A stretch of 64,000 nt of DNA from Lepidodermella squamata (lineage: Eukaryota; Animalia; Gastrotricha), in NCBI GenBank assembly GCA_047495785.1, contig JBLDXI010000020.1, forward strand, positions 2,046,001 through 2,110,000, given 5' to 3'. Positions 1,970 to 57,242 of this stretch are shown one piece after another (position 1 is the first letter of the stretch; the number at the start of each line of letters is the position of its first letter). The translations under genes were made by a program, and so were the position numbers. The notes under the pieces were generated by a model, which was not told the origin of the DNA, ran no database searches, and saw nothing but the letters and a program-made list of their open reading frames with translations.

Positions 1970-3537
1970 ATGAGTCTCGGCAATGAAAGGAGGCCTATCA
2001 GCCATTGCGCTGAATCTGAGGAATTTTCGACCGACTCGTCCGAATGTAAAAAAATTCAGAAAATTGCTTATTGTCGCCCCATTTTGAAAATCGATCGAAT
2101 GTTAAGCGACGACGTCATGCATGCGGAAACTACTCTGCGCGGCCTTGTCACCGCATCTACTGAACTTTGGCCTTACGTTATCAAGGTATGAAGTCAGCTT
2201 ATTATAGATTTCGTCTTTCCCGAAACCTTTTTATATAGAAAATGCATGAAAGCGCCAAAATAATACCCTAAAATCAAATTACCTCCTCAGATTTAATTGG
2301 GACATTTTTCCAATGTTTTGTAATTCAGAATTTATGGGAAAAACCAAATGATCGTTGATTACTTCCGTTTGATATTTTTCTAAAATACAGGAAAATCTAC
2401 AAAAATAATTTCTTCAATTATTATTTCCAACATTTAGGACATGGAGATGAATGCCCCTGAAATCGACCCGAACATTGACCCCGACCTGCTTTGGAAATCA
2501 GCAATGAGCGATTTCAGGTACACTCTTGGCCCAGCCGCGTCTTTTGCTCGGAAATTGCCTGGTAACGCACTTTTCCAGTTCATTTCAGTATCATCGCTAA
2601 AAGTTCAATTTAAAAAATCTAATTTTAAATTTTGAGATATTTTATGCATAAAATTATCGACATGCAGCATCGCTAATTAACAAAAATTAGCGCAGTTCAA
2701 GTCTTAGAAAACCTGATTTTCGAGGGTATTGTGATGATAGCAGACCCTTTTAGCATCAAATTCGAAACAATCATACCTAATTTTCGCAATTCTCAGGATT
2801 TTCAGTTGTCCCTACATCCGATCGATGTTTTCTATTCAGCCGAGCGTTGGTGCCGCTAATCGTCGCACAAATGTCACTTCCTAAACTGCAATTTCTTCAA
2901 CCATTCTTCGGAATGACAGACACGAGCCGAACAGTATTCTTGAAATTTTTCCCTAATTTCACGGTAAATCAGCTTAATTTTAGAATTATTTTCATTTATT
3001 ATTCCTTATTTTTGTAGCGATTCAGTGACAAAATTGACGAAATTGTCCAGGTCCTGCGGGCATGGAATCCGGTCGATGCCGAGGTTGCGATTCTGGCTTC
3101 TTTCATTTTTTATCAAGGTATTTGAGAAGCAAATATTTACCAAGCGAAATTATTTATGATTTTTCTACAGAAGAGCTTCAGAACTATCTGATTCACCCTA
3201 ATTTGGTGCTTAATATTAAAAAGCGCCTCAAGGTAGTTTTGCAAGCTGTTCAGGGTCGGCTGCCGAACGCTGATCTCAGGGTATTTGAACTCGAAATTAA
3301 TTATAAATGAGTCTTTCCAATCGAATTTATTGTCTCAAGCTGCGTCACTTTATGCACTGCTACGATTTGCTGAGGCTAGTCGATCAGTGCTACCTGGACG
3401 GCGCGACGGAGCTGATGCGTAGCAAAAAATGTATAGCTCAAGACAACGTTTACGCCGAATTGTACGCTCAGCCTAATAAAACCAGCTCAAACAGCCGTTT
3501 CGACCATCTCATCACTTACCTGTCGTCTAGAACGTGA
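1970..3537 (+). CDS. Nuclear receptor LBD-only protein, copy 1 (~304 aa)
   Basis: Exons 1970-2185, 2438-2561, 2797-2963, 3018-3117, 3171-3280, 3340-3537 join in frame. LBD signature FARKLPGFSVVPTSDRCFLF, H8-9 WNPVDAEVAILASFIFY, H10-11 LRHFMHCYDLLR, H12 VYAELY. A possible micro-exon 1863-1870 adds MSPFCK. No zinc finger. Confidence 0.85.
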
Positions 3538-6673: not shown

Positions 6674-6702
6674 GTGACGTCGACTGATTAGCTTATATAA
6701 AC
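6674..6702 (+). promoter_or_regulatory. Putative core promoter of copy 3 (CRE-like TGACGTC plus TATA box)
   Basis: gtgacgtc at ~6675 and tatataaa at ~6694, ~50 nt before ATG 6748. Confidence 0.4.
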
Positions 6703-6747
6703 TTCCGGTTTTGAACTGAAATTGCGAATTGCATAAAATTAATCGCA

Positions 6748-7850: not shown

Positions 7851-9869
7851 TAAAGACAGCTAATTTTCTGCTCGAATTTTTCTTATTTACTGAATTCTCA
7901 GAATAAAAAAAATAATTACTACGAAATTGCGTTTTTAACGATCAATCGTCTGATTTCATCGAAGCGTAGTCGAAAAATTTCGTCATATTTATTTAACTGT
8001 AGTGCAGAGTTTCCGTGAAATCTAGACTAAGGCAATAGACCCGTTCATAATCTCCTTTATACCGACTTTTAAAATAATCGACCAAGGACAAATTATTCGC
8101 AAATGTTAGCTATGCGTGGGTAATCGATTGTTTTATAGCTAACATTGGACGTTCGAATAAATAATTTGCCGAACTCTCGCCAATTCCAGATCCATATCTG
8201 AGCCCCTGGTTATACTTCCCTCATCCTCGTTTCCTCAATGCGGTCTCCATGCCTGAGTGCTATAAGATAAATATTATGGCGGCGGCCATCATTCAGGATG
8301 AAATTAATTGGTTTTTGGTTTTATTTGGCAAAGAACCCCCTCTCCTCCCCCTTTCCCCCTACCGTAGGGTGGGGTAAGTTTGGAGATAGGTAACCATGTT
8401 TTTCGAGGAGCAAAAATCAGTCTTTATTCAGAAATTGATTATTTTTGGTACAAAGGTTTGTAAGGCGATTACCGATTCATCTATAAATTTTGGCGATTTT
8501 GCAATTTTTAACCGATTTTTGGCGATTGAAAACATTTATATGAATTAAGTTGGATTGTAGCAAAAAGACGGGGAATTTTTTTTTGCAAACTATTTTCCAA
8601 AAGAATTGTTTACAAAGAAGCTAGACCGTTTTTCGGGTTCATTCCGATTTTGATAGAGTTGAAGACAAATCAGCGCATGTTTTTATGGTTTGTCAAAAAT
8701 AGCAAATGCTGCTAGACGGATGTTGCCTGCTGTTATTATTTAGGGAGCTCGCGTGCTCAAAGTTCTTCTGTTCCTTGTTTTTCACTTTGAAAAAATTGCT
8801 TATAGTTAATAATTTACCTCAATTTTACCAACGTCTTTTTTCTTCAACATTTTATCATTTTTATTTCTGACATTTCTGCAAGCATTTAGCACCGAAAAAT
8901 TATGAAGAAGACAATAATTGTTAGCGAATGTTTAAACAGCTGGAATTTTCTTGAAAATTCTCCGAAAATAACTTTTATCTTTATAACGGCGTAAGAAAAT
9001 GATAGCTAGGTACGTATAACCCACATCTAAGTTCATACTTGGGCTTCAAAACTGTTATGAAACCCATGCTTGAACGAACTACACTTGAACCATCCAAACT
9101 TGAATTGTACTATTGCTAGGGTAAGCACATTAGCGTGCCAACATATTTTCCTTTGTATGAGCTGTTTCTAAGTTACCAGCGTAGGTTTTTGAGGTTTTTT
9201 CGACAAGCTTGGATTTATCTCTAAAATATAAAATCCAACAAACCTGACATCTCTCAACGACCTACCAGCCTTATTCAGCTTATAATTTGTCGTCCGAGTT
9301 GAATGTAGACAACTATAAGTGCGGTTTCTATTAGCGTTCACGGTACGTGAATAATTGCCCAAAATTGAAAAATTGTCCGTTTATTTTGTCACGCGGTTCA
9401 CGGAAAACGGACCTGTCCAATGTAAACTATTTATTTAAGATAGCTATATGGATAGCACTTCGCGCACATCTGATTGAACTTGATTTCCATGTTTTCAAAG
9501 GGGGCGAATATACGAATAAATATGTTGTTGCAACCTATTATTGTCCAATTGGAAAGTGTAACGCGCGCATGTCTATTAGGCGCGTTGTTTTTTAAAACTA
9601 CCTAATATTAACAAACGATGTAGGGGTAAGATAAAATCACACAAAGTGTGTTTACGATTTTGCATTATTATTTTTTGTATCATAGCTCAGTGTATTCATG
9701 TGAGCGCGCGAATGCACGGCGACTTTTCATTCCAGTAGTATCTTAGAGAAAGGCAGGTATAAAGGCACAGGTATTCAACAGCTCTATAGACTTCAATCTC
9801 TTAATTGCTCAGCGCGACCTATATGCTACTTTGTATTATACGTTTATATGCCGTCTATTGCGTGCTAAT

Positions 9870-10444
9870 AATTAATTCGGAATGACTGCTCGTACATATA
9901 TATGTACGCGATTTTTGCTGCTCGTACATATGATATGTACGAGATTTTGGCTGCTCGTACATATATATGTACGCGATTTTTGCTAGTCGTACATATATTT
10001 CAAAAATATTTCTGCTGAACTTTGAAATTAAATGGATTAATCAATTTTGATCGCAAATGTTCCAAATTTTAACCATATGTGCATCGAGGCGTGACCAACC
10101 TCCCCTCAAAGTTTGGCATGCATAGGGTGAATACCCATTATTAGCCAATCTGAAACCCGAAATTACCCGAAGTCGGTAATGTCCGGAACCATAACCGATG
10201 GGCGGGTAAAAGTTTGCAGGTGTGTGGAACCCTGTTAGAGGCATTTGCCCTCAAAAAATGAACTTGCCAGGATTGAAATTGAGTAATTGGCTGAAATTCT
10301 AAGTTTTCATTCGAATATATGTACGACTAGCAAAAATCGCGTACATATATATGTACGAGCAGCCAAAATCTCGTACATATCTTATGTACGAGCAGCAAAA
10401 ATCTCGTACATATATATGTACGACCAGAGTCACTCTAATTAATT
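9870..10444. mobile_element. Foldback-like non-autonomous element with modular palindromic TIRs
   Basis: Arms ~9870-9998 and ~10314-10444 are reverse complements, each built of ~3.5 units of ~32 bp containing the palindrome CGTACATATATATGTACG. Confidence 0.8.
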
Positions 10445-10988
10445 TTAGCTCAAGCCGAGTGACCTTTCTTCCAAAGCAGTATCAAGTCATTATGCAAACA
10501 TGGCATTTCTCGCAGCTTTCGGCAGTCATAGGTCTTCTTCACGAAAAATTTGTTCTAGCTAGAAGCTGCCTTAAAAAATCCACTTTCAGCTTAATCGATC
10601 TAAATTTTCGAATATTGTCTGGAAAGTAGGGCGCGACCACAACTCATAAGTCAATATTCGACACTTGTTAACGTCATTAATTCCTATAACAACGTTGATA
10701 TATTTCATATGGCGCACTCGTGTCCGACTTTAACATGCCGAATCGATCGATCCGAATGTATAGTAAGTATAGAGTTATGTGTATGTGTTTTCGCACTCAG
10801 TTTTGTATATATAATGCATTATTTTACCACTTTACGTGTGGAAGTTGCTCTAGCTACCTTTGCAAATGCGTCGCTTATAAAGCGTGAGAATATTCGATTG
10901 AAATTTGAGTAATGCTTCCGATATTTTCTTATTTTAAATCACTTTTGAATAGATGCTCCACTGTTAGAAAAAATAAGGCCGCAATAAT

Positions 10989-12094
10989 ATGTCTGAAAGA
11001 GAGGATGTCGACGAGAACTCTATCAGGTCAGTGTCGACCCTTTCATCAGCAGATTCGACCGAGTGCGGCCGACCTACCGCAGTTTGTGCCCCATTTCGGG
11101 TCGCCAGCGAAATTAGTTCGATGGCCCATCAAGACGCCATAAATGCCGAGCAAACACTCCACAGGCTGGTTAAAGCATCTCGAGAGCTGGTCACATTAGA
11201 AGGCCCGGTTTGTCCTAATTATTGAAATTGATCTATAAATTTATTGAATTAATTTTCTAGGATATGGTCGGAAGCGTCGGCCTGATGGACCCTAATTGCT
11301 CGCATCTAAAAATGTATGCCGATTTGATGAAAAATTTTCGTCAAACCATCGACCCAGCTATGAGATTTCTCGAACAACTACCAGCTTACTCCGCCCTTGC
11401 GCAACGCGATCGAGCTTTACTATTTTCCCGGTCTTTCCTACCTTTTGTCGTCTGCGAGTTGTGTTTGCCGGCTAATAATAAGAATGCGTTTTTCGGCTTC
11501 AATGAACACAATCGAATGTTGACAATGCGACTCTTCCCCGAGTATGAATTATTCGGCGAGGTTATCGAAGAAATTTGCCATGTTTTTAACATCTGGAAAC
11601 CTACCCAGTTCGAAGTCTCACTTTTACTGGCTCTATTATTTTATCAAGCAGGTTTGTTCCATTATTTATGTGGATTTTTCATTATTTCGAAATTTTTAAA
11701 AAATATTTAAATTAAATTAGTTTAAATATGCATACATATTTTTTAATTTGTTTATTTTGTGTTGATATTTTTAGAACTGGCGAGTGAGCTTGCTAATCGC
11801 GTGATTGTACTCAATGTCATACGCCGTCTGAAACTAGTTCTTGTCTCCTCGTTGTCCCGGTTTGATAGACACACCTCCGATTTACGCCTACGCCATTTTA
11901 TGCGCGCCTACGACCTCATTCGATCGACACCCATCGTGTATCGCGATATTGCTTCAGATATTTTTAACCGGTTACATACCCGACAGCTACCCATCGACCC
12001 GTTATACATGGAACTGTACGTCAAGCAACACCGGGATACTACTCATTTGAATCGGCTATTCGCAGCTTCGCCACGGACTATTGTTCAGTCTTAG
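10989..12094 (+). CDS. Nuclear receptor LBD-only protein, copy 4 (~309 aa)
   Basis: Exons 10989-11207, 11261-11651, 11775-12094. Motifs FLEQLPAYSALAQRDRALLF, WKPTQFEVSLLLALLFY, LRHFMRAYDLIR, DPLYMELY. Confidence 0.88.
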
Positions 12095-12931
12095 CAATAT
12101 AAAAAAAAGATATTTCGTGCAATTAAATTCACGGTAAAATAATAATATTGTATAATATAAAAAAATCGAAACAGCACATGTGGTTCGTTAAACGTTGTTT
12201 TCACTTTTTATTTGATAAAATGAAAATGTCTGCCTGCGACAAAATAAACGAAACAAATATTAATTTTTTTGTTCATTTCGGACACAAGTGTGAGAGCTAA
12301 CCTGCGAGTGATCGATCATAGTTATGAACAACTGTCTCTTGCTAATACTTGGGTCACATAAAATGTCAATTTTCCCAAATTCAAAGCATTTTTCGAATTT
12401 TCTCGAAGCTTTTTTATCGAGGCTTTCGGCCGAACACAACGTTTATTGCATAAAATTTCCCGTCTCTTTAGCTTTCGAATGGCACAAGGTCCGAGGTGAT
12501 TGGAGAAATACTTGAATTTCAAGAAATTTTATAAACAAGGCAGCTCAAATGACAATTTTGTACTCCCTCATATCTCCCTAAACTAAAGACAGATCGGGAA
12601 TAATTGTGCATGGCATTCACATAGCGTTGCTCCCTTGGTTGTTATCGAAAGAAAATGAAGATCCTATAATTGGTTTTTTTGGTCATGGTGAAAATTTTCG
12701 TAATTTTGGACAAAATATAAACATGCGGCTATTCAAAATTCCAATTTTTTCTTAATTTTGAAAAAAACAGGTGATGCGTCATCTGTTCATAATTTTTCCG
12801 AAATTTGACCCGAGGTCAATAAAAACTAAAAATTCACAATGCCCATTCCGTAAATGCGGATGAGCGTCTAATATTACCCGCTAATTGTCCAGCTTTACTC
12901 AAAAATTTTACAATAATCGTGAATCACCTTC

Positions 12932-14590
12932 CCCAGACGAACGCCGGTCATATTACTGTCATATTAAAATACGCTTAAATTCATATTAATCATGCCTTAC
13001 AATACATGTTACATTCATATAGTAAAATGTCCTGAATGTAATATGAATTTCGAGAAAAATTCATATGAATTTTCCGCGAAATTCACATGACATTCATATT
13101 AATCACGCCATTAGAATCATATTAACCAAAAAACCGAATTTCATACGGTTGTCATATGAATAATCAAAAGAAGTGCTCGCCACCTGGGCAACGCCAAGGG
13201 ACACCTACTTGGGGGCTCCAAGGTGACACCCATGTCATCTGGAGGTGAAGGGAATCTTGAGATGGGTTCCAGGTGGCTCAGAACTAAATATGAATAAATC
13301 GAAAGGGATAATTTACTTACGTCGTAGGTCGGAGTCGAACCCGGGTCGCCTTGGCTTGAAGTGCGACGCGCTACCACTAGACCAGGTCGTCGCTATTATA
13401 CGGTGGATGTTAATAGGGGTATATGAGTTTCAAGATTTTTTCCAGTTTTCAAACTTCAGAGGGCAAATCATGTAGCTTGCACTGCTCATAGAGCAGTTGG
13501 AAACAGGTATCCGGTCATCCATGGTACTCACAGGGGGCGCCTAGTATCTATGGTTCCCAGTTCCCAATATCGTTCATTGTATGTTCTGTTTTATTTATTG
13601 CGTTGTATTTATTGGATGCTACTTATAGAGTCTTACTTTTACCGGAACAAAATTTTGAAATATTCAAGGGGCCTAAAGCCACTCATGAACAATTTCAAAA
13701 ATGTAGTGATCAATCAGCATAATTTTAAATAGATTAAATAAATCAGCTATAAATTCAGTGTAAAATTTTGTTTAAGACGCATTCCTCACTATAAGATGCA
13801 TTCAATTCCTGAATTTCGAAGAAATATTCGAAAAGCGACCTTTAGCTTATCTAAAATTAGGTTCCGCAACAGGCAAATTTGGTTCTGCTACAAGATATTT
13901 TCTTATATTTATCAGTCTTTTTGTGTTAATTCTATTCATTACAGAATCGTTCAAATATTAGTTTGGTGTAAAAAATCGCCTAAATAATCAAAACGAGCAT
14001 TTAGAAATTAGTGCATGCGCTGCGAAAATTGCGACTTGGCGCACACAAAAGAAATTTCGAATACTCAAGTTTAATGGCGAAATGAGGCATAGGCGAACCT
14101 CTTTATTTCACACCTACTGGACCTAATAGCAGTACTCAGTATGATCCCAGAGGTTTATCTCACTACTACCAGAAAATTTGTAGAAACTTAAGCATCTTTT
14201 TAATATGAAAAGAAGCGTCTTCTTTCATATGAAGTTTCACATGAATTACAAGCGGCTATGCTCAGAACTTCTAAGAATAGCCGATCATATCAAATCAATA
14301 TTACCGTAGAAGCAACATTTCATATAGTTGCTAGTAATATGACATTCATATGACCGCTACTCGAACATTTCATACTAATTCGTATGTCAGGACAAGAATC
14401 AGAACAATATGAAATTCATATGAATGTAACTTACAAAATTAAATTTTTTTTAATTTTTGCTAAATTTAATACTAATATGATATTCATATGAAAATTACAG
14501 TATTTTTCATACCAGATATCAATTCATATGACAACCTTATGAAACACGTATGAATTTGCCTTGAAAACATATGAACGGCGTTCGTCTGGG
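12932..14590. mobile_element. Non-autonomous DNA transposon, CMC/EnSpm-like
   Basis: 15-bp TIR CCCAGACGAACGCCG / CGGCGTTCGTCTGGG, 2-bp flanking duplication TC, many subterminal (A)TTCATATG(AA) repeats at both ends, no transposase ORF. Confidence 0.8.
13321..13391 (-). pseudogene. tRNA-derived sequence (pseudo-tRNA/SINE-like head) inside the transposon
   Basis: Minus strand has A-box TGGTCTAGTGG and B-box GGTTCGACTCC at tRNA spacing; acceptor and anticodon stems do not pair canonically. Confidence 0.6.
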
Positions 14591-15314
14591 TCGTGAAATT
14601 TCTTTATTTTAAGGCTGATTTTAAACCCCGAAAAACTGGGTTTCGCCCAAAATTACCCTGCTACCATACGGTAATGGAAAATTCTCGCTCTAATAATTAG
14701 TGGTGGACATGCAGTTTTCCACTGACATCATCTTATGCCAATGCGCAGTAGAATTCCAGCAGATGATGCCGCTTTCTATTTTTAGCCAGCCAAGTCACCA
14801 AATTGTCGCACACTAAGCTCGTCGTCTCTTCGATCATTTGTGGACACAAGTCATACCGAGTTGGTCATGCGCCCGCACCTCTTGACACAATTATTATAGT
14901 AACGTGACCTCAAATTTTCCCCTCATTTATTCTTAGCTCACAAAAAATCTAAATTTCAACCATTTCTGTCGCTTTTCTTTTCAAGTTAGCGAAATCAGTG
15001 AAAGAGCACTGAGCCACGGGGGCTCAAATTTCAGAAGCCATCATTATCCCCTTTGGACATTACATCGAGTACAGATAGGTATGAAATAAGCTCTTATTTC
15101 GAATTATAAGCTTTACTTAAAGCGAATGACGTTGAATCATTCAATTATCTTAAAAGTTACTTCTGCCCTAATTTTTGCCTCTAATTGATCGCAGTCTCAC
15201 GTGACTATAAACTTCGAAAATGTGTTTTTTTCACAAAAATGCACCAAAGGCATAAATCTTGTCTATCCTCCCCACAAGATACAACTAAATTTTTTAACTC
15301 ACTGATTTTAGAAA

Positions 15315-16442
15315 ATGCAAGCGAGTAATTCGTCATCAGACTTGGATGCTCGGCAATCTCTTTCCGACGACGAAACTAAGCCTACCCCACCCAGCGCCCG
15401 AGCCATCGTCAAAGCAAACCGTCGAAGTTCAGACACGTCCGAGAACACAAATCTTCCGCAGCGTCGCGAGGCTATCAGTATCGAATCAACAATCCAACGC
15501 CTTATGACCGCTTATGCCGAGTTGAACGCGTACGAACGAGCTGGCCTGATGCCGGAGAGCACCCGCGTAATCTCAGACATGACCCAGTTTGACCACGTGT
15601 CGCTTTGGAAATTAGCCATGACCCGTTTCCGCGAAATTCTCCCGCCCGCTATCACGTTTTGCCGGCAACTCCCCGCCTTCAACGCTATGCCTGTTGAAGA
15701 CAGGTGCAGGCTATTCGCCGATACCGTTCTACCTCTCTATCTAGTACAATCAGCCTGCCGCAAGGTGCCGACTGCTCTTCGAGAGAACTCGTTGATCAGC
15801 TCGAAATCTACATCAATACGGCCGCTTTTCATCGGCTATTTCGAGCCTTACCAACCTCTGGCTGGTATGGTTGATGAAATCGACGCCGCTATTGAAAGTT
15901 GGCAACCTAGCGATGAAGAAATCGTCGTGCTTCTCGGTTTCCTTTTTTACGAAGGTAATTTTTGTTAATTTCGTATCAGCAATTATTTTATTTACATTTT
16001 ATTCAGAGAGTAATGCCGATCTCATGAGCCCTGTTTTAGTGGCAAACATCGCACAGCGCATGAAAAATGTCCTCAATTCAATATTAAATCAAAGAAATGA
16101 TCACGACAACATAAGGGTGGGAAAATAAAAAATCCGCCTTAATAATTATTTATTTGTGTTTTTTTCATTTTATAGCGACGTCATTTCATGCGCGTTTTCG
16201 ACTTGCTGCGGTGTACACAACAATTTGCCGTTGAAGCCACCCAACAGCTGTTCAAAAAGCCCTTGTCGCCGCCCGCGTCAGAACTACACGTCGATCCTGT
16301 GTTTTGGGAAGTCATGGTTCGCCGTCCATTGCCCAGCGATGCAAAAATCATCGAAATTTCCGCAACTGTTGACGCCATTGCTGAGGAGCCTGAGGCGCGG
16401 AAAGGTTCTTTATTTCCATGTCTCTTTCAACTGCTGAAATAA
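15315..16442 (+). CDS. Nuclear receptor LBD-only protein, copy 5 (~338 aa)
   Basis: Exons 15315-15954, 16007-16116, 16176-16442. Motifs FCRQLPAFNAMPVEDRCRLF, WQPSDEEIVVLLGFLFY, RRHFMRVFDLLR, DPVFWEVM. Ends LFQLLK. Confidence 0.88.
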
Positions 16443-16853
16443 CGCTCACATCTGAAATCATCTCAATTTTTATTTATGTTAATCGCCTCCTGCCTTTTTC
16501 TCTCTGTCGACATTGTTGTTATATTATACCAATGACCTTTGCTTGTTTGTTGAGTTTCAATGACCCAAATTGCGTCCAAATCGCAATAATTAACGCCAAG
16601 TCGTTTTATTGCTGAAAGGAGGTGCAATAAAATTGTCACTAATCGAGATCACGCGACTTTTGTTTGTTTAGCAGCTCTAAATGAAGAGGCCTAAAAAGAT
16701 CGCGTGTCAGTTTTTGCCTGGCCGGACGGCACGTGTTTTTTGGAGTTCGCAGACGGGTTCGATAGACCCAATCTTGCGGGTACTCGCATACATTTAAAAA
16801 CAGAAAATTCACGCACAATGTTTTAAATTATTTTATTCCTCCGATAATTCCAA

Positions 16854-19217
16854 ATGAGTAGCCAGCCACACCAACCTAAAAGCTCGACAAATTTTGACCG
16901 CTTCGATGACGAGACCAAGTCTGACTTGAACAATTTACAACAATTACTAGCGTCTAACCCATCGTCTCAACAGCGAGTTCAAATTATGCCGAACACCCAG
17001 GAGGATGTTGCGTTTGAAGCAACGTTAAGGCGACTGGTTAACGCTACTGCCGAGTTCAAAACGTCCCTAGACACCGGCGTGGCATCGGAATCATCGCCGA
17101 CCGATCGCTCGTCTACCTGGCAACGACAGATGGCCTTGTTTCGACATGCCGTGCGGTCAGTCGCCGCTTTCTGCCGCCATTTGCCCGCATTCAGCGCCAT
17201 GCCAATCGACGACAGATGCCGCCTTTTCGCCAACTCGTTTCTGCCGATATTTCTCGGACAACTCGCGCATCAGCCGGCGTCGGTTAGGCAAAAGTCGTTG
17301 TTCTATGCGATGAGTGGACCGCTATCGACGCAACGCCTCGCGTTTCTGTGCCACTTTCCGCAGTTTCAACATTTTATTGTTAAAAGCGAGGACATTTTCA
17401 ACACGTTTGCAGCCTGGAAGCCGTCTGCTGAAGAATCGGCTCTGCTATTCGCCTCGCTGTTCTACCAAGGTCTTTGCTATTTCGCAAAAAATCTCAATTT
17501 TAAACTTTGCTTTTGATCATTTGTCTCAAGTTTTAGCGAATCATTATCATTAACGCCACCGCCAAGGCACGAAAGGGGCTTTTAGGAAGTGATAGGTGAT
17601 CTTCAACTCCGAAGATTCATACTTGAAATGAAGCAAAAACATTTAGTTGAAGGATTTACCATTCGACCGCAGCGGCTTACGGCCTTCGGAATGTATGTAA
17701 ATCCTGTATGAAAAGTTCGGAATACAATGCGAGGGTTATTTTTTCCTCGCGAAATCTAAGCATTTTTTTAGTCTCATCACTGTCGAACTAAACGTCAGTT
17801 CGATTCGCGCCACTTGGTTACCTTCCTTGAAATTATAGGCCTGCCGTGGCATTTTAACAGGAAATTAATCTTTGCCTGTCTCTTTCAACATGTCCTTTTT
17901 CTAGGTCAAAGCCAATGTCCCCTAACGTAGTGGCCATTGATAGAAAATATGAGATGTTGACCCTATCGATTATTGTAGAATGTCAGGAGTCTAATTCCAA
18001 AAAAAATCGCTCCAGATATAAAATCCAGAGTTATAGGTAATGGTTCTCAAACCTTTAAGAGCAATAAAATCCGTGGAACTTTGGTCGGATATTTATGGAG
18101 GCTATTTATTGATGTCGGGATCGTTTCTTCGAATAATAACCACCGAGGCTGTATAGGTAATGCAGGCGCTGTATGGGTACTGCAAAAATCGATTTGCTAT
18201 AAATATCGACTCGAATTTGCTATAAATATTTGGTCGATTCGAAGCAGATTCTAAGAATAGAACTCTCTCTTGTTTTGGCGGATCTATCTTGTCATTTTGT
18301 TATTTTTATTTTTTGTATTCATCAAATTTTTGTAGACAGGAACATTCCTTGGTACTTGAGCTAAAACCTCCGAATTCGGCCGAGTTCGAAAATAGATCTT
18401 CGTTTTCATCATATTCCTCCCTTCAAACGTTGCTTTGCGGTCAAAATCTAGGGCATTTTTATTCACCCAAATTTTATAGGGTAATTTGTCGGAATTCAAC
18501 TGAAAAATGTGCGCGTGTCATCGAAAATGTTTTTGCCAAATGGTTCATTCTCGAGTCAAATATAGCCATGCCCCAATTTTGAAAGAATTTTGACCGGATC
18601 GGCTTACCTAGAAAGGATGGATTGATTTTATCGGTCTTACTTGGAATTTTTCGTGAATTTCGATCACTTCGAAGTTAGTCTTTAAACTTTGAGTTTCCGC
18701 GAACTGTACAAGCCCTTTCAATACCAATTTTAAAATAAATTTTGCTTTATAATCAGTTGCTAATAACTTTTTGTACCCCCTTCAAGACGGCGTGGAAGGC
18801 CTCGTCAATTCGCATCTCGTTCGCAACGTCAGCGAAAGGTTGAAAACAGTCCTCATGGAGTACCTGAAGCGACAAAACGATCTAAATTACTCTCGAGTAA
18901 TATTTCAAGATAATTTTCGAAAAATCATCAATTTTTTATTTCAACAGCTTAATCCTTTGCTGACGGCTTTCGATTTACTGAGGCAAGCCCAGCTGAGTTG
19001 CATCGACGCAAGTTCTAAGGTATACCCGCATTCGAGCGGAGTTCAAGCTTTACCGATCGAACCTCTGTTTTGGGAAATTTTCGTGCGCCGCCCGATGCCG
19101 CCTGGATTCCCGGAACCAACGCTCGACGCTAATAGCACGGCTGCAACTCCGACCCCGAGTTTGTTTCCGAACACAGTGAAACCTAAATTACCTCACTTGG
19201 CTAAATTGTTGGAGTAG
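16854..19217 (+). CDS. Nuclear receptor LBD-only protein, copy 6 (~331 aa)
   Basis: Exons 16854-17469, 18787-18896, 18948-19217. Motifs FCRHLPAFSAMPIDDRCRLF, WKPSAEESALLFASLFY, EPLFWEIF. Ends HLAKLLE. In-frame TAA at 16845. Confidence 0.88.
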
Positions 19218-20806
19218 ACTCTCATTTTATTACTGTATATAAAGAATTAATATTACCAATTTTTGACATTTATCGTAATTTCCGACACTGCTATTGTCCA
19301 TTATGACTTGAAGAAATAAAAACAGACAGGAATTTGGCAAAAAGGCTTTACTACTTTATTTGCTCAACTCAACTTTCTCGCAGTCCGGGTCCGTGGAACG
19401 ATATATTTATTTCTGATTTGTGGGAATCTTCGAAATACATATCCTAATGATTAATATCGCTTTGCTTCCTTTCATTCCGATCTTACTCCGGATCTTTTAC
19501 AAACCTCCATTGAGTCTTTTTGGTTTATTAAATTCGGAGCAGATTTTTCGTAGATTCTCCGAAAACCAGGCTAAAATTGTGCAGTTTTGCTCCAGTAAAA
19601 GCCAGACTTTCATTAATGCGGGCCAAATTGTTCATCGGCTCGCCCCGCCGACTAGTGCGTTGTTACAAATAAAAATATAGTTCAATAGTTGCAACCAGTC
19701 GGACAAAACAAAGCCAGACTTGCGTTACAACGGACCGAATTTTGCATAACAAGGTGCGCCTTGTAAATATATTTTTCAACCAGAGGCTAACCCAGTTTTA
19801 TTGTCATGAAGCGGTCTGTTTTTATTGAGATGGACAAAAAATAAGCAAGTCCGCCTTAATACAAAACGACTTTATTGATAGATCCCGATACGAACTAGTC
19901 GGCCTTCCGGAACGGAAATAGAGCACAAAAGGTCTTTCTTTCTAAAATCGACTGATATAAATCTTTAATTTCAATCCCAGTTTTGTAGACCCTCGTCGAG
20001 AACCTAGAAATTAGAAAATTAGAAAATTCAAAACCGCTTGGAAACTAGGTAACACCCGAGTTTTATGGAAAAATTTCTATAATTTGTGCCCAAACTTTGT
20101 CAATATCTGACCATGTTCTAGCTTTTAGCTAGCGAGCTTTTGTTTCTCGGGCTCTAGACATCCTCAATAATATGGCTGGGCATATTTTGGGACATCTCAT
20201 TTTGACCTGGAATAGCTGAAAACGTAACGACCAGCTTTTTCCGAAACCAGTCCAGTTTGTAGGGAAAGAAATTGGCTATAAAGACCCCAACATTTGCTTC
20301 GAGATCTTCGGAATTCGGGATCTTTTTCCGAAAGTTCCACCTTCAAAGTTGAAAGTGTGAAGTTCCTATATCCTAAACTCCTTTCATTGGGTTTGAAGCA
20401 AATGATAGGAAATCGCCGTCTTGATTCGGAAAAATCGGGCGTTTCGTTTTTCGGCTTCAGGTGTCCCAAACTATTTTTTGTTGGAGGTTTTTAAATTAAA
20501 GGTGCTGGGACTGAAAAACCGGGGTTAAAATGGAAGGAGGTGGGCAAGTTGGTGATTCACCGTTGATTTGAGAAAAAAATTAGCGTATCAACCATATTAT
20601 TTTGTTCCGTTTTCTTTGATGAATCAGACGACCATCTGACACGCCTTTTCTTGTGGTTGGTCTTTCTATAGTGAACTTTGTCTTCAAGCCTTGATTTGCG
20701 TGACCTAATTTTTGTTAGTGGAAACACCTGCAGCAGTTATATCGAATAGGGCCGTATGGCATTTTCAAGGTTAAACACGTCATTTTCAAATTCAAATTTA
20801 AAAATT

Positions 20807-23330
20807 ATGAGTAACAGTCCGTCACAGAAGAAACGAACGTTGTACGATGTCGACGATGATGAGACCAAGGCGGCTATCAAGGAGCTTCAAGAGCGGCTAA
20901 CGCCTCAAAAATCACCTCGCCGCGTGCCGATTTCGCCGAACAGCCAGGAAGAAGCGGCCTATGAATCAATGCTGAGAAGGTTAGTCACCGCTGCGGCTGA
21001 ACTACGCGCCGGTATCGACATGGCCCCGAAATCTGCCTTCGAACCTCCAGTTATCAATGAGGTCTCGCTTTGGCGCAAATCCATGCCGGTATTCCGCGAC
21101 GCTGTTCGAGCTGTGGCGGCTTTTTGCCGGCAATTGCCGGCTTTTGGCGCCATGCCAATAAATGACAAGTGCCGGCTGTTTGCCGACGCCTTTCTACCGA
21201 TTTATCTCGGCCAGTTGGCTGAACAGCCGGCTGCCGTCAGGCAAGGATCGCTATTTTATTTAATGAGTGGCGCGTTATCGCCGAAAAGGCTCGAGTTCTT
21301 GCGACATTTTCCGCAACTAGAAGAGTTGGCGAAGCAAAGCGATGACATACTAATGGCTTTCGCAGCCTGGCGACCGACTAGTGAAGAATTGGCGATACTT
21401 CTAGCGACGTTTCTCTATCAAGGTTATAATTCAAATAATTTTTTGCTCGAATTTCTACCAAATCATTGGTAGCTTAGGTAGTGAAAGGTAAATTTGGATA
21501 AAACAATATTTCTCGAAGTTTAAAAGGTCAGTAATTTTACAAATTTGAGCATGGTGATTCTTGATTTTCTGGGTGATTTTTGGGAATTTCCTATTCATAC
21601 CTGAATTTTAGCAAAATTTGAAGCGAGATCCGCTAACCTTGCATAATTAGCAGGTATGCTTAAGGACGCTCATTTGCATATGCAAAAGTCATGTACGTTA
21701 TAACGTTAGGGTAGAATTTTGGGTAGAGTTTCGATTTTGGGGAAAAAGAAGATGGTGGGACATCAGTTGGTTTTTTTATTGTTGATGACTAAAATAGCGA
21801 CTGAATTCTGGGCGTTCAATAAAACCGTGCATAAGCCATAGATAAATAAAAAAGAGAGATCTGACACGCTAGTACATTTATGTGTGCCGAAATGATTCAT
21901 CAAGAGTTTTTGCTTCTTGGTCGCGTGACCTGAAAATCACTTGTCAACATCACTATAAAAAATACGGCATAATCTACGCAAGTGACAAGTGATTTCGGGT
22001 GGCTACTTCACCTCATTTTATCTCAAAACACACCCCCTTCGATTTTCTCGAAAAAAATAGGGCATGTAGATCTCACCTTCAACTCAACGCTTGTCTAATC
22101 GGAATTTCCGGCCAGGGCATGGTTGTTGGTAGAAAAATTCTGAAAGAATAAGCACGTTTCCGCGCAGTGATTATTATTGCTTTTTCTAGCTTTGTGCAAA
22201 AAATCGCCTGATGAATCACGGCGTCATCTGCAATAATTATGATTCACGCCACCAAAATAACTAGCTATCAGCTCAGCGCCATTAAGTTGATTGCTGAAAT
22301 GTGGAAGGTTTGAAAAATTCTAGAAAAATAACGGAAGGCCGGCCGCAAATTCGGAAAAAATTCAGATATGGCTCGAGTTTGATACTTCAAAATAAAATTA
22401 TTTCAAAAAAAATCGAAGGGGGTGTGTTTTGAGATAAAATGAGGTGAAGTAGCCACCCGAAATCACTTGTCACTTGCGTAGATTATGCCGTATTTTTTAT
22501 AGTGATGTTGACAAGTGATTTTCAGGTCACGCGACCAAGAAGCAAAAACTCTTGATAAATCATTTCGGCACACATAAATGTACTAGCGTGTCAGATCTCT
22601 CTTTTTTATTTATCTATGGCATAAGCTAATTAGGCGTGCACTCTTATGTCCAAATTTACCCGTAACTTCACTAACTTGAATAAAATCAAGGTAAATTTTT
22701 AAACTTCTAGAAATGTTCACTGCCATCGGATATCTGCACTCCTTTTTGCTCCCACAATTTCAAAGTTATATCATTTTTTCCTGATTTTCAAGACCCGAAA
22801 TCATGGATTTAATACGTGAATACCAGGTAGATTAGACGTTATTAATTTGTATTTTCACATGTAATTATTAGTCCCATTAACATAATTTTTTGAATTTCTG
22901 AAGACAGCTTGGATTGTTTGGTTAATCGCAACCTGGTCCAGTCCATCAGCCAGCGTTTGAGGGTCGTTCTGATGGAATTTTTCAGAAGGCGAAAAGATCC
23001 TAATTATTCCAAGGTAAAAGCTTTAAATAATTCCCCCAAATTTTTAATAATTTTGTTTTTTAGTTGCATCAATTCGTTAGCGCGATTGATTTGTTGAGAC
23101 AAGCTCGGCAAATTTGTATCGAAGCTTCGACAGCGCTGTTCCCTGTTAATACCGCGTCGAAGCTGCCTATCGATCCCATCTATTGGGAAATTTTCGTCCG
23201 AAGACCTATGCCGCCTGGCATGCCAGAACCGGTGAAGAAGCCCAGTTCGATAATTCATCTACCTCCATCAGCTTTGTTTCCACGCTCAGCAGACCTTGCC
23301 CTGCCTCATCTTGCTGCTTTGTTGGAATAA
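20807..23330 (+). CDS. Nuclear receptor LBD-only protein, copy 7 (~330 aa; alternative start 20756)
   Basis: Exons 20807-21422, 22904-23013, 23064-23330. Motifs FCRQLPAFGAMPINDKCRLF, WRPTSEELAILLATFLY, DPIYWEIF. Ends HLAALLE. Closest paralog of copy 6. Confidence 0.88.
21837..22618. mobile_element. MITE with ~210-bp TIRs and 8-bp TSD (P/hAT-type) in intron of copy 7
   Basis: Termini CATAGATAAATAAAAAAGAGAG / CTCTCTTTTTTATTTATCTATG; near-perfect arms ~21837-22050 and ~22405-22618; GCATAAGC duplicated at 21829-21836 and 22619-22626. Confidence 0.9.
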
Positions 23331-24741
23331 TTGATTTATTAAGAAATAAATTCAGAAATTTTACTTTTTTTCATCTTCGAGAGAAATAAAGTGATGTAGT
23401 CTAGTTTTAATTTGGCCAAGTGATCAAAAATAGCCTATGGTGACATTTCTAGGTAATTTATTGTAACCTGCTATAATTAGTCAAATGTATGTTACCGAAA
23501 AAGCGATCATTTTCCCCAGTTATAGGAAATAGCCGATTAAATGCCAATACGATGATGCGCGCCATCAAATAATGAGGGTCTGTTGCGGAAACTTATTGCT
23601 AGTGACAGGTGTGCGCTGGACGCGCTCGAGCGTGGTTGATAATTCTTGACACACCGCACTAAAAATTCTGCACAACACAATAATCACCTGTTCGACCTGA
23701 TTCACGCTGACAGCAGCAGCATTGACGTTTTTTCACCTTCAACACACCCGCTCGTCAGTTCAACACTTGTCACTTGCAATTAGCTTAATTACGTATATAC
23801 CATAGTCCCTTTCAGTGTGAACATTTAACAGCTTGAAATTTCGAATATTCAACATTTTTTGTGGATTTTTCGCAATTTTTATTTACCGAGAAGTCTTTTT
23901 TAAAGTCTGTAACCCTCCAAGCTTCGTATTATTACATATTTAGGATCATAATATGGCTTCCCAGCATGATGAGGCTTTGTAATAATAAAATAACAATATT
24001 ATCTATAATAAACACATTTGCCCTCTCAAGCCGCGAATGAAGCGAAAAAAGCCCATCGTTATATAAGGAGTCAGGAACACGTTGTCTGTGTGATGAGCTT
24101 CATTTTCAATCAATCAATTTAATCACTCGAAATAATAATATATAGAAAAAATATCACGCAGGTGCACACGTATGAAATGAACTCTCATTTTTTAAACACT
24201 GTTTCCTTTCGACTACTCGATTTAAGCGCGTCGCGTCTGCTTCCTTTACTACTCGCAAAAATCCAGCTACGCTTTCGCCTCAGCTACTTAACGTATTGCG
24301 AGGTATCGAATTCGCAGACCGACTCTAACCACGACTTTTGCCTCAGCAGCACTCGATTCGCTTCGCAATCACGGGAATTTTTTTAAATAGTTATTTCCTT
24401 CGGATTTGCGCAGATTTTCCGCTTAAAAAAATGAACATTTTTCTTATAGATTTTTAATTGCGAATTTTTAAAAATTCAAATATGACCAGTTTTATTTTCA
24501 GGTTCCTTTTTGTCACATTCTAGGATTTTTTCATTCTGTGTGTCGTAATGCGTGCAAAATAATTACAGCGATTGTGTTCGCACATATGAATAATCACAGT
24601 CAAATCTGGCCTAATCCTTTAATTATATGTCACTTGATGGTGGATCTTTTACGACCGCCGTCGTCTCGATGAAATTCATTACAATTTTTTGCGCTGTCTC
24701 CGCATAGAGTTTTGATCGTATTTTTTAAACATTCTGGAATA

Positions 24742-27215
24742 ATGATCTACAACCAAGACATCATCGACTTCTATCGGCCCTCCAACGCCGTTTCTACATC
24801 ACTGCAGCAAGCGCCTGCAATCGTCCAAAGTTATGGCTCATCTTATCCCACCAGTGGAACTCTTTGTTTGGTTTGTTTACACGCCAAATTCTTGATTTTA
24901 ACGGTACTATTTTGTCCTAAAAGGTGTGTAATTCTCGAAAGCCTTGTCCGAGTGTTCGCAGCAAGCAGCCGACGATTTGCGAGGCCTGCAAGGTGATATA
25001 AAAAAAAATCTGATTAAACTCATCAACCTGTTATTTTTTTTATAGAAATTTTTCCTCCGACATCGCGATCTTAAAGTACAGCAAGGTTTGCAATGTGCAA
25101 CCGGGCGTGGCGATTGCGACGTCACGGTCACGGCCAAACGTCCGTGTTCTTCTTGCCGCCTAGCCAAGTGCTTCAACATCGGCATGCGGTTTGAAGGTTT
25201 TCTTATTGAATTCCAAATTTAGATGAAATAAAATCAACCATAATTTTAGACTACCCAATGCGGACAAAGGCGAGTAAGCGATCTCTGACGGGTAACGTCA
25301 TCTCGCCTTCCCAACTTCGCCAGCAGCAGATGCTTCAAATGCGAGCCGATCAGTCTTACGCCAATACGACACCTGGCGGGTTTTCGATGAGTAAACGAAA
25401 ATCTATTTCGAGCAACAGCGACTCATCACCGCCGAATGACGACCAATACGCAGGAAGCCCGGAAGGTTCTTCTGGCAAAAGTGATTCGCCCGAGCAGGCT
25501 GATTGCGAGTATGACGAAATTTTCGACTTGACGTCAACGGGCGCTGCTGGCCCGTCGTCAGGCAATGCCATGGCGATTGTTTCTATTCCGCAAGGCCTCG
25601 CGCTTACTGGCTTCTGTGAAGATTTGCTTCAAAAATCGTTAAGAGCCCTATCTGAACTATCTGCATTCGAAACAGTTCGTTTTTTAGCCCGCATAATTAG
25701 GGTTTCAGAACATATGCGTGTCTCAGACGGAGCCTTTTTTAGCTGGCGTTTTTCCAATAATTAGGCATTTCAAAATTCTAGACTGATGGCGGGATGAATC
25801 ATTTAAATTAAGTTAATGGGAATGGGAACTTCATCGATCCTTGGGACCTTTTATTTTTAATGCTAAAATCTTCGAATTTGCTAAATTTCGATTTTTCATT
25901 TCGCTAGCTACCTCTCCGGCGTCAGATCGATCGAATTCCCGATGAAAACACATGGTGGCAGTTGAAAATGGAACATTTCCAAGCCGCTGCCAGGAGCGCA
26001 ACGGCCTATGTTCGCCAACTTCCATGTTCGATCCGCCTTAAAAATTATTATTTCCTAAATAAAATTGTAATTTTTTCAGCCTTCACCACAATTCCGTTAG
26101 CTGATCGTCCTGTCCTATTCGCTAATGCTCTGTACCCGTTATTAATCGCCGATTTGGCGCTACCTTCTCAGCCACGTGGCCTATCGTTTCTCGGCATGAA
26201 TGAGCGAAATCGGGCCGAATTTTTGCGGCTTTTCTCCGAATTTCAGATGCTTTACGATGACACGAATCGAATCACCGAAGTTTTCGCGCAATGGTGCCCG
26301 ACCATGTTCGAATTCGCCATCCTTGCCGCTCTGCTATTTTACGAACGTAAGTCATCAAAATTTACATTTCTCGAATTCAAAGCACTTGAAATCGATCAAT
26401 TGAAGTGACAAAATTGTTAGTGAGGCTCTTTTGATCAAACATTCACCCTTTTAATGAAACGGGTCATCATCTACCCATTTCTTCCTAGACAGTTTGGACG
26501 GTTGTGTGAGAATCTAAATTCGGACATTTCGATTTTCACATGACATTTCACGTGATATTATAATTGAGATGAAAATTGATTGATCACTTAATATGAACAA
26601 ATTTTATCGTAAACAGCCTGTTTCCCCGGTCTGCAGTGCGCGGATATGGTCCGGCAGGTTCACGACCAGTTGAAATCCTTACTCCACGTCTACCTGCCGA
26701 AGCAGTGCTCGAACCCGAAACTGGTCAACTGGCGGCTGGAACAGTTCGAAATCGCCTTCAGCATGCTGCGACGCGCCTCGGTCGACCATTGTTTAGCCAT
26801 TGAAATGCTGGCTCGGCGGCGACCGGGTTTCGTGTCGATGAACGACTTGTTCTTCGAAGTTTTCACGCACACGCAACGCGCCATCAGCTTAATGTCCCAG
26901 CAGCGCCAGGACACCCAATCACCGTCGTCAACCGCGTCATCGTCCTCCTCCTCAGGCAGTCCGGGTCATGAAATTAGAGAGCGGCCCTTGGTTCTCGCCC
27001 CACTGCCTCCGCCTCAGCAGTACGCCCCGCAGAATTACCTAGCAACCGGCACGTCCGGGATTGTGTCGAATTTCGACTACAACAGTATTTCCGACAACGC
27101 CAACCCGGATAGTGACGAGACGTACTTGAGTTTTGAGCACGCTTTCAGCCACCCGCCGACTTCAACGAGTAGTGTAACGACGTCATCTTACTGGCAACCG
27201 GCCAGCTATACCTGA
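24742..27215 (+). CDS. Full-length nuclear receptor (atypical C4 DBD with CEACKK P-box plus LBD), ~585 aa
   Basis: Exons 24742-24870, 24924-24992, 25046-25196, 25250-25674, 25908-26025, 26080-26346, 26617-27215 join in frame. DBD CLVC-x16-CEACKKFFLR..CATGRGDC-x9-CSSCRLAKCFNIGM; LBD YVRQLPSFTTIPLADRPVLF, WCPTMFEFAILAALLFY, DLFFEVF. Confidence 0.9.
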
Positions 27216-27477: not shown

Positions 27478-30400
27478 TCACAGTTTGAGGCCGGCGCCTT
27501 TGCTTTTGTCCTCTCGGTAGCAAATCACGTAACGCTGAGCGACTGGAAATGGCGGCGACAGGTGATCCTGAAACATAAAAAATGGTGGGTTAAAAATTGC
27601 AGGTAAAAAAATGAAAATTGAAATTTTATTTAAATTCAAAATAAATTTTAAATTTTAAATTCAGATTTTTTCAATCATTTCTACTGATTTATCGAATCGA
27701 ATTTTTTTCAATCGATAATTAATTTCCACTTTTCAAGGGGACAAAAAATGTACCTCAAAATTTACCGATTAAATTAATTTTAATATTTGTGACTTTAATT
27801 ACCGGGTAGCAATCGTCTTCGAACAGGATTTGGTAAGGGTCGCGAACCCGTCGCGGGGGCCTATCGACGACGCCCTTGTAAAAGCACGTTGTCTGCGGGT
27901 ACAGAGCGAGAACGACCGTTCCAGGTGCGAATAACGAGTCCGCATGCGTCTTTGGATTGGCACGCCACAACGGCAACGGGATAACGCGACGACGGCTGAG
28001 CACGTGAATCCTTATAACACAGGATAATTCGCAAATTTAGAACAAAAACACGCTTCATAATAAAGAGAACTAAATTAGACTGAAATTGCATCGAAAAGTC
28101 AACGTCTGATATCCCTAAAACTATCAACTTTTTTAGGAATAGGAACAGATTAGAACAGAACCGAAAAGAACCGAAATAGGAACAGATTAGTCGAAAATCC
28201 AAGGTTAGAGAAACATAGAAAAATCTCGAAATTAATCGGGAAATTTTATTCGAAAGCTTTTTATGTTGAATATTTTTATCGAAAATTAAGATTTAAAGGT
28301 GGATGGGTGATTTTGATTTTCGAAATTCAGACTCCTGATTTTCCTTCAATTCTGAGAATTTTTACGTGGTGTTTGGCACAGCGCCGTTTCAACCCATGAA
28401 ATTCTTCTCATCCATTTTAAAGTTACCTGATTTTTCATTATGCTAAATTCCACCATCGAATTTTCACTCATTTTTTAATTCAGAGTCTTAAAGACATTTT
28501 TTTCAAAAAATATTTGATCTTAAAAAATCAGGGGTTCGAAATTTAAATTCCCACTGGATTTTTTCGGAGAATTTTCTGAGAAATTTACGATAAACGACTT
28601 TCCGATTAGCTTACTTTCGTTCTTTTGTTTTCTTCTTGACGCCTGACAACGGATTTTGTGTTTAAAAATTTGCTTTATCCAAAAATGAGATTTTTGGATG
28701 TTTAATCACGAAAAGCCTGAAGTCTGGATGATTTTTTAAAAATTAATAAAAAATCCAGCTTAATATAAAAAATTGAATAAAATGAGAAAACGAACTGTTT
28801 TCCATCCTCAGCATCGATATCCACAACTTCGTACTTGCTAGTCGCTTGGTTGAAGCACGAAACCTCAGCTAGAATCCAATTTTCATCCGCATCATCCGCA
28901 TCTTCACTGCGCACCTTCGCCGCGACCATATCGCCCGGCTTCGCTAGGTAGTAAGAATCAACCGATTCGGCTCCGCACAACGGCGGCGGTTCATCGTCCG
29001 GGTCGTTGATCGGCGGAATCCACACGGGAAGGTTTTCAGCCTGGCGCATGAGAAGAGCCATGAGGACACCGCGCCGAATCGGCGGCTGGCCTGTTCCGAG
29101 TGATAGCGAACCCAGGGTGTTGCTACCCGTCGGATTTTGAGGGGTGACGAGGCCTAGACCAGGCGGGGCTGATTCGCGCACGATTTGATTGCACAGGGCA
29201 ATGGCGGATTGGAGAGCCTGTGCTTCGTTTTTCGCCTCATTTAACGCATTAGACAGGAGACTCCTCAGACGAGATCTGGCATAACCTGAAGAAGCCGATG
29301 GCGAGCCTGCCCGGCCTTGACTGCAAAATTGTTGAACAATTTTAATTTCAATATTTTTCAAATTTTTGCATTCATTTTTTATGTTTGTTTTTTTCCAGTA
29401 AGCGCAAAACAGCGCGAACTTGATGCACGATTGAACGTGTGAAAAATTCGATTAAGATGTACAGTAATTGCAAGTTTTATTCAATTAGGGCGCTAATTGT
29501 GACAATTACTAATGGAATTAATAGAACGTCGCCATGCACGTCAATTAGGAATTTTTTTCACGCGTGGAAAATTAGATAAAAATCCCAACCAATAGCGAAA
29601 AGTCGAGCAATAAGAATTCCTGTTGAATTCGGAAAAATCACAACCTTAATTTATGAGCCTGAAAATACGCCTTATTTCGCTGGGTTTATTCGTTTAGCTT
29701 CCTCGAACCCTCAGGTGTGTGGCAAATTTGCCATGTTCGCTCCGAAGACCAATAAATCACTGATTGGCAAAATCGATATCGGTATTTCAGTTCGAAATAA
29801 ACCTCGTAAATTGACCTCAAATATCGAGAAATACGAAAAAATATGTGATAATAAAAAAGACGTCCAACTTGAAAAATCTTATTTAGGAAAGTGTTGGAGC
29901 CTCAAAATCAAGAATCGAACGAAAATCGAAAGCTACAACCCATTAAGCAATCGACACGCGGCTTCATTGCAAACAAAACTTATTTTTTTTGGTATTTACG
30001 CATCGTTGCAACAATTTCTCTGAAATTTTACTATACTGGAACTTTTCCAACATGCCGATTTTGATGAGTCCAAATGTGCCAGGGTCGAACGGCTGATAAC
30101 TGCTACGGAACTCCAAATCAAGGAACAAGTCACCACGGAAGTTGTCAAGCTCAAGTTTGAAGTCGAGTAACTCCAAGCGATTCATCTCAAACAATCCTCG
30201 AGATTTACAAGGATCTTGGATTGATTGTTGATGAAAAATCATCTTTTAAAGGCCAGGGTTATGAAGCCATCAAAGAGGCGTACCTCAGGGCTAATTTTAT
30301 TGTACGCGCCCTCAAAGGGCAATTAGCTGAAACCTTTTGCCACTGTTTGCCCTCTTCTTGAGTATTATTCTAGCATTTGGTCTTCATTTTTGAAAAAAAC

Positions 30401-57218: not shown

Positions 57219-57242
57219 GTCCGACGGGCTGCGGAAAAAGTC

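Follow-up and report, generated by a model that had tools for sequence, protein, structure and literature searches.

The window analysed here was a stretch of 64,000 nucleotides (64 kb) from contig JBLDXI010000020.1 of the gastrotrich Lepidodermella squamata, and it consisted of eukaryotic DNA with a G+C content of about 40% and short GT-AG introns. Between 2 and 27 kb, its plus strand carried seven co-oriented genes encoding ligand-binding domains (LBDs) of nuclear receptors, numbered copies 1 to 7 (c1-c7), followed by one relative that also encoded a DNA-binding domain (DBD), referred to below as gene 8. The subject of this report is the extreme C-terminus of copies 5, 6, and 7. An earlier examination of the letters alone (the sequence-only reading) had proposed that these three proteins ended in LFQLL-K, LAKLL-E, and LAALL-E, respectively, and direct translation found all three ends at precisely the positions that it had given (Table 1). 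Judging from the comparisons described below, the C-terminal pattern P-x-LxxLL-[E/K] was a short linear motif under purifying selection.

The gene models of copies 5-7, which were built by hand, had in common three exons, canonical GT-AG introns, identical intron phases, and a middle exon of 110 nt. Exon 1 encoded an N-terminal region of about 65 residues with the sequence DDETK and then helices 1-8, exon 2 corresponded to helix 9, and exon 3 contained helices 10/11 followed by helix 12 and the tail. The full-length proteins of copies 6 and 7 were 53% identical, and copy 5 showed 34-35% identity to each of them. All three open frames began at an ATG codon with no nuclear receptor exon upstream, and the proteins were devoid of a DBD. 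The DBD of gene 8 was the only one found in the window by tblastn with the zinc-finger exons of gene 8 and by a zinc-finger regular expression applied to all six frames. Moreover, tblastn with copy 7 found no extra LBD copy downstream of the array in the window.

Gene 8 had a P-box of the CEACKK type that was interrupted by an intron (CEACK-K), and the spacing of its first finger was unusual (24921-25195). Its identity to copy 7 was 38% in the aligned region, and it was the closest relative of copies 5-7, which arose through local duplication from a gene-8-like receptor. The sequence-only reading had also stated that the DBD-bearing gene did not have the LxxLL tail. This was correct, since gene 8 ended in a C-terminal stretch of about 130 residues that was rich in Ser, Pro, and Gln and was free of the motif.

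Several lines of sequence evidence placed copies 5-7 in the nuclear receptor superfamily. The Pfam family PF00104 (Hormone_recep) has a cut-off of 23.5 bits, which exon 1 of copy 6 exceeded with 30.8 bits (E 2.5e-07) and copy 7 missed with 18.9 bits (E 0.0011). A profile made from six genes matched the LBDs of RARalpha, Rev-erb-beta, LXR, ROR, and Nurr1 in the PDB with E values from 1e-5 to 7e-4. The helix 3-5 signature FCRQLPAF..D.CRLF aligned with FAKQLPGF..DQITLL of RARalpha, and both the helix-10/11 and the helix-12 patterns were recognisable in the alignment of copies 5-7. Because of the Pfam match, the PDB profile matches, and these helix patterns, the LBD of copies 5-7 was judged to be complete. 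Helix 12 followed the pattern hydrophobic-hydrophobic-W-E-hydrophobic-hydrophobic in all three proteins (VFWEVM, LFWEIF, and IYWEIF in copies 5, 6, and 7), and its Glu residue was invariant across all eight genes (c1-c7 and gene 8).

In copies 5, 6, and 7, the LxxLL motif was located 38-41 residues past helix 12 in an F-domain-like tail. All three proteins had Pro at position -2 relative to the motif, so that the C-termini read P-C-LFQLL-K, P-H-LAKLL-E, and P-H-LAALL-E. Some features of the tail had been described too generally by the sequence-only reading. Namely, LFP did occur in all three tails, but it was adjacent to the motif only in copy 5 and lay 9-10 residues upstream of it in copies 6 and 7, and the Pro-rich linker was a property of copies 6 and 7 (24% Pro) and hardly of copy 5 (11%).

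The pattern His-Leu-x-x-hydrophobic-hydrophobic was found shortly past helix 12 in 5 of the 7 copies, the two additional ones being copy 4 (T-H-LNRLF) and copy 1 (D-H-LITYL). Thus, translation recovered the degenerate equivalent that had been proposed for copy 4. For copy 1, the proposed FDHLI was indeed present (3499-3513), but H-LITYL gave a better register (3505-3522). Copy 2 had no such motif, and in copy 3 the stop codon followed directly after helix 12. Copies 4 and 1, whose identity to copy 7 was about 25% for the last exon, thus carried weaker forms, and the motif probably predated the array.

An LxxLL sequence at the C-terminus was rare in this DNA. The window contained 723 stop-to-stop frames that were 40 amino acids or longer. 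LxxLL lay within the last 7 residues of 4 of them, and 3 of these 4 were copies 5, 6, and 7, leaving a background of 1 in about 720 other frames. Copies 5-7 were old paralogues, as seen from their protein identities of 34-53% and from the saturation of their synonymous sites (proportion of synonymous differences, pS, 0.60-0.91), and the proportion of nonsynonymous differences (pN) in the tail was 0.42-0.67. Because of this saturation, the dN/dS ratio (nonsynonymous to synonymous rate) was unusable for these copies. On the other hand, the same saturation implied that shared residues reflected constraint rather than recency, since residues free to change should have been randomised. The residues shared by all three tails were SLFP and the three Leu of the motif, and the three-way invariant columns numbered 9 of about 41. 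The three Leu were encoded by CTC/CTG/CTG in copy 5, and copies 6 and 7 used TTG or CTT for the first Leu and TTG for the other two. Therefore, the amino acid had been preserved through silent change.

Strain differences and expression were examined in contigs from two sequencing runs over a 6,000-base stretch in the region of copies 6 and 7, copy 5 lying outside it. The first, X1, was a public run whose RNA nature was a guess, although it behaved RNA-like, and the second, X2, was a DNA run that was about 2% divergent in non-coding DNA. Among the differences listed for these contigs, 10 were coding (taking a CC>TT pair as a single change), of which 7 were silent and 3 changed the protein; 77 further differences lay beyond those listed. 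Two of the listed differences fell within the motif and both were silent Leu changes, namely 19199 G>A in copy 6 (TTG>TTA) and 23321 G>A in copy 7.

The X1 contigs fell on exons, including exons 1-3 of copy 7, whereas most of the intron and intergenic sequence had no depth and the remainder showed traces. They showed the GT..AG joint 18896>18948 of copy 6, as the gene model had predicted, and continued without a gap from exon 3 past the stop codon into the 3' untranslated region (UTR) in both copy 6 (19032-19327) and copy 7 (23150-23364). Since these contigs crossed the stop codons without further splicing, the motif was the real C-terminus of copies 6 and 7. Thus, both genes were expressed, and in the observed transcripts the open frame ended with LxxLL and its one following residue. 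Several low-depth "opposite strand" joints in X1 were discounted because they looked like assembly artefacts.

Relatives in other organisms were remote. Word searches gave no match, whether the query was exon 1 of copy 7 or an alignment of the three tail exons, and neither did two metagenome locus scans. A profile search run exhaustively against 1.84 billion representatives returned 61 matches, mostly from metagenomes and one from a tapeworm. Save for a few very short alignments, none of them exceeded about 30% identity to copies 5-7 in well-aligned stretches. Many of these matches were large DBD-bearing proteins, their tails past helix 12 were mostly short, and none of the 61 ended in LxxLL. 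The best match, 77 aa long, was a fragment of a relative of gene 8 with about 57-68% protein identity, encoded on a 759-base ENA metagenome contig (L001), too short to include neighbouring genes. Therefore, a related animal was present in an environmental metagenome. The contigs of a distant fragment (P0017) measured less than 1 kb and yielded no tails. The sequence-only reading had proposed, as a check, conservation of the motif in orthologues despite divergence of the linker. Such conservation held among the paralogous copies 5-7, and no orthologues were found in these searches.

Table 1. Coordinates of the receptor copies, their C-terminal elements, and other features of the window.
Feature	Position	Strand	Description
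Copy 5 gene	15315..16442	+	338 aa, LBD-only; exons 15315-15954, 16007-16116, 16176-16442; single stop
Copy 6 gene	16854..19217	+	331 aa; exons 16854-17469, 18787-18896, 18948-19217
Copy 7 gene	20756..23330	+	347 aa; exons 20756-21422, 22904-23013, 23064-23330
Copy 5 helix 12 (core of activation function 2, AF-2)	16293..16325	+	DPVFWEVMVRR; hydrophobic-hydrophobic-x-E-hydrophobic-hydrophobic pattern
Copy 6 helix 12	19059..19091	+	EPLFWEIFVRR; spliced model
Copy 7 helix 12	23172..23204	+	DPIYWEIFVRR; spliced model
Copy 5 tail past helix 12	16326..16439	+	F-domain-like, 38 aa; ends SLFP-C-LFQLL-K
Copy 6 tail	19092..19214	+	41 aa, 24% Pro; islands PMPPG-PEP, SLFP, LPHLAxLLE
Copy 7 tail	23205..23327	+	41 aa, 24% Pro; 21/41 residues match copy 6, same islands
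Copy 5 LxxLL	16422..16436	+	LFQLL; Pro at -2; K then stop (LFQLL-K-stop 16422-16442)
Copy 6 LxxLL	19197..19211	+	LAKLL; E then stop (LAKLL-E-stop 19197-19217)
Copy 7 LxxLL	23310..23324	+	LAALL; E then stop (LAALL-E-stop 23310-23330)
Copy 4 weaker equivalent	12044..12061	+	H-LNRLF; 6 residues into 21-residue tail, 10 more residues after
Copy 1 weaker equivalent	3505..3522	+	H-LITYL; better register than FDHLI
Gene 8	24735..27215 (start approximate)	+	DBD-bearing relative; zinc-finger exons ~24921-24992, 25046-25195; LBD ~25908-26880 (spliced)
SGF29 tudor-like domain gene	28702-29361	-	SAGA coactivator complex subunit; Pfam E 5.6e-08
Diphthamide-synthesis gene	32509-33291	-	
Cation-efflux (ZnT-type) transporter gene	34346-36263	-	His-rich loops; divergent from the second ZnT-type gene
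Leucine-rich-repeat gene	37168-38136		between the ZnT-type genes
Cation-efflux (ZnT-type) transporter gene	38720-40497	+	His-rich loops; divergent from the first ZnT-type gene
Kinesin gene	49056-53333	-	
Non-long-terminal-repeat (non-LTR) retrotransposon	54084-57971	-	apparently intact; 1,044-aa open reading frame (ORF), reverse transcriptase E 3.8e-31; 242-aa ORF1 ahead

Among the neighbouring genes, the SGF29-like gene adjoined the receptor array, which may be coincidental. An Rfam scan of the window gave no match. Intron 1 of copy 7 contained a region (21800-22600) where the X2 depth, otherwise about 60-100, leapt to 1,700-13,000 and loose ends were numerous, and this region was a high-copy repeat or mobile element.

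The N-terminal regions of copies 5-7 had features of their own. The acidic motif DDETK was kept in all three copies (15366-15380, 16905-16919, and 20855-20869) within an otherwise divergent region, and a strain variant (20868 A>G) turned it into DDETR in copy 7. Copy 6 had an N-terminal LxxLL (LQQLL, 16935-16949) that was peculiar to it, the aligned sequence of copy 7 being LQERL and copy 5 having nothing similar. Finally, a splice-acceptor-like ttttag or tgtaag was located 0-3 bases upstream of the ATG codon in copies 5 and 1 (15230-15314 and 1890-1969) and was less clear in copies 6 and 7; the sites before copies 5 and 1 were compatible with spliced-leader trans-splicing.

As to the function of the motif, our foremost though tentative proposal, based on analogy with other receptors, was that it may dock in an AF-2 coactivator groove. 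It would form a two-turn amphipathic helix that enters the groove in the fashion of a nuclear receptor (NR) box. A flexible tether of 30-35 residues would place this helix beside the protein's own groove, and two options could be envisaged. Under the first, the motif would dock on its own protein, in cis or across a dimer, and make it blind to coactivators. Under the second, it would dock in trans on another receptor, for example, the gene 8 product, and block it as SHP does. If docking occurs, we considered the cis option to be somewhat the likelier and the trans option to be not far behind, because the tether would raise the local concentration of the motif, provided that the groove binds LxxLL at all. 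The parts required for a coactivator groove appeared to be retained in copies 5-7, namely the Glu of helix 12 and the clamp Arg of helix 3, which in the sequence FCRQLPAF aligned with the clamp Lys of RARalpha (FAKQLPGF).

A number of points weighed against docking in the groove. The second clamp Lys, in helix 4, aligned with Ala, and the helix-3 clamp residue was uncorrelated with the tail motif across the array, being Arg in c1 and c3, Gln in c2, and Glu in c4. The helix would be limited to about 7-8 residues before the chain end, and LxxLL is a short sequence that has many non-receptor partners too. Moreover, the conservation was observed among the paralogues of one genome and near-identical strains, and no close orthologue of copies 5-7 was recovered in the protein or metagenome searches.

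The docking proposal can be extended to a model in which copies 5-7 would constitute a lineage-specific class of receptors whose DBD was lost and which acquired a tethered pseudo-coactivator. Here, the tethered LxxLL would occupy the protein's own AF-2 groove and would be released, or swapped to the groove of a partner (gene 8 or another of the many expanded receptors of this genome), when a ligand or dimer partner repositions helix 12. Such proteins would be ligand-gated blockers that arose independently of SHP and DAX-1. With all of its parts taken together, we regarded this model as unlikely, although worth stating.

The evidence of selection indicated that the residues of the motif matter but left the partner unspecified. 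It was also possible, if somewhat less likely than docking in the groove, that the motif docks on a non-receptor partner, such as a coregulator with another domain that binds LxxLL or a factor for export or sorting. Alternatively, it may form a "helix 13" that packs elsewhere on the protein's own LBD and lends it stability, in the manner of steroid receptors, whose C-terminal extensions do the same. The islands SLFP and PMPPG-PEP suggested several contact points in the tail, and the kept N-terminal DDETK showed that copies 5-7 carry other lineage-specific short motifs. However, the only recognisable domain of these proteins was the LBD, and the LBD is the best-known binding target of LxxLL helices. 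The more specific readings of the tail as a nuclear export signal or a PDZ ligand were rejected since the patterns were not common to all three copies: a reversed nuclear-export pattern fitted copy 7 but not copies 5 and 6, and a last residue of E or K mismatches PDZ-type C-terminal motifs.

It was improbable that the LxxLL has no specific function and is a Leu-rich end that copies 5-7 inherited from their common ancestor and that survived by chance. This explanation drew on the Leu content of the three proteins (10-12%), on the small number of genes (three, of which two were close paralogues), on the post hoc choice of the motif, and on the three-way invariance of the tail, which was not obviously above that of the LBD. 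But with synonymous sites saturated, unconstrained residues should have been randomised, and the Leu residues stayed constant while their codons varied. Furthermore, the position relative to the stop codon was fixed in all three genes, and related motifs occurred in the far more distant copies 1 and 4.

Finally, an extra exon, alternative splicing, or pseudogenes could mean that the tail was a gene-model artefact and not the true C-terminus, which the hand-built models, the restriction of the X1 evidence to copies 6 and 7, and the guessed RNA status of X1 might allow, but this was highly improbable given the exon-confined depth, the GT..AG joint, the contigs that passed both stops into the 3' UTR, the intact state of all three models with canonical splice sites, and the mostly silent variants.

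LBD-only receptors that silence other receptors via LxxLL boxes are known chiefly from the vertebrate SHP and DAX-1. If docking in the AF-2 groove is true for copies 5-7, then this capacity would have been invented independently, at a site past helix 12, in an invertebrate with a hugely expanded receptor family, and the evolution of groove blockers from duplicated receptors would be a recurrent route. These proteins would also provide a natural and compact model for self-occupancy of the AF-2 surface. If the partner is another one, then the tails would still represent a clean case of selection on a short motif within the F domain of a receptor, and F domains are regions of poorly known function.

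The sequence-only reading had likened copies 5-7 to SHP (NR0B2) and DAX-1 (NR0B1), which are LBD-only receptors whose LxxLL-type motifs occupy the AF-2 groove of other receptors (PMC3346990). The likeness was one of architecture, since copies 5-7 also were LBD-only proteins with LxxLL and without a DBD, whereas their box was C-terminal and past helix 12. The boxes of SHP and DAX-1, a vertebrate-centred group, are N-terminal or inside the LBD. An N-terminal or internal box of the NR0B type was not conserved in the array, given that LQQLL was found only in copy 6. With respect to kinship, no NR0B chain was among the 60 best PDB matches, the best of which were NR1 and NR4 LBDs, and the LBD profile of the copies fitted NR1-type LBDs best. 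In a protein-language-model search, the exon-1 piece of copy 7 was nearest to a cluster named NR0B2 (score 0.95), which we treated as a lead only. Thus, the analogy stood for the combination of an LBD-only protein with LxxLL, and it failed for the position of the box and for kinship, which was with NR1-type LBDs and gene 8. On the strength of these alignments, copies 5-7 were not considered to be members of NR0B, and any likeness to SHP and DAX-1 would be convergent.

Other known systems were closer in some respects. In the N/C interaction of the androgen receptor, an FxxLF motif docks in the receptor's own AF-2 groove and competes with coactivators. Copies 5-7 similarly had an NR-box-like motif of their own, and LFQLL of copy 5 resembled FQNLF. 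However, the androgen receptor motif is N-terminal in a full receptor, whereas the motif of copies 5-7 was at the extreme C-terminus of DBD-less proteins. The NR boxes of the p160/SRC coactivators had the same LxxLL core as copies 5-7. NR boxes commonly have Pro at -2 and a polar or charged residue following LL, and His or Pro also occurs immediately ahead of their first Leu. In coactivators, the boxes are internal and there are usually several per protein, whereas each of copies 5-7 had one box, followed by one residue and the free carboxylate.

The F domains of ERalpha, HNF4alpha, and RARalpha modulate or block the coactivator surface, and helix 12 fills the groove in antagonist-bound ER and in COUP-TFII. 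In the RXR tetramer, the receptor's own helix 12 is reported to dock in the groove (PMC5520057). Like the tails of copies 5-7, these elements were C-terminal parts of the receptor itself. A full-text literature search that combined F domain, LXXLL, and intramolecular returned no F domain with a terminal docking LxxLL. To our knowledge, no F domain of ERalpha, HNF4alpha, or RARalpha has been described as ending in a canonical LxxLL. By analogy, the closest mechanistic precedents for the tails of copies 5-7 would be the N/C interaction of the androgen receptor and the placement of helix 12 in the groove in antagonist or tetramer states.

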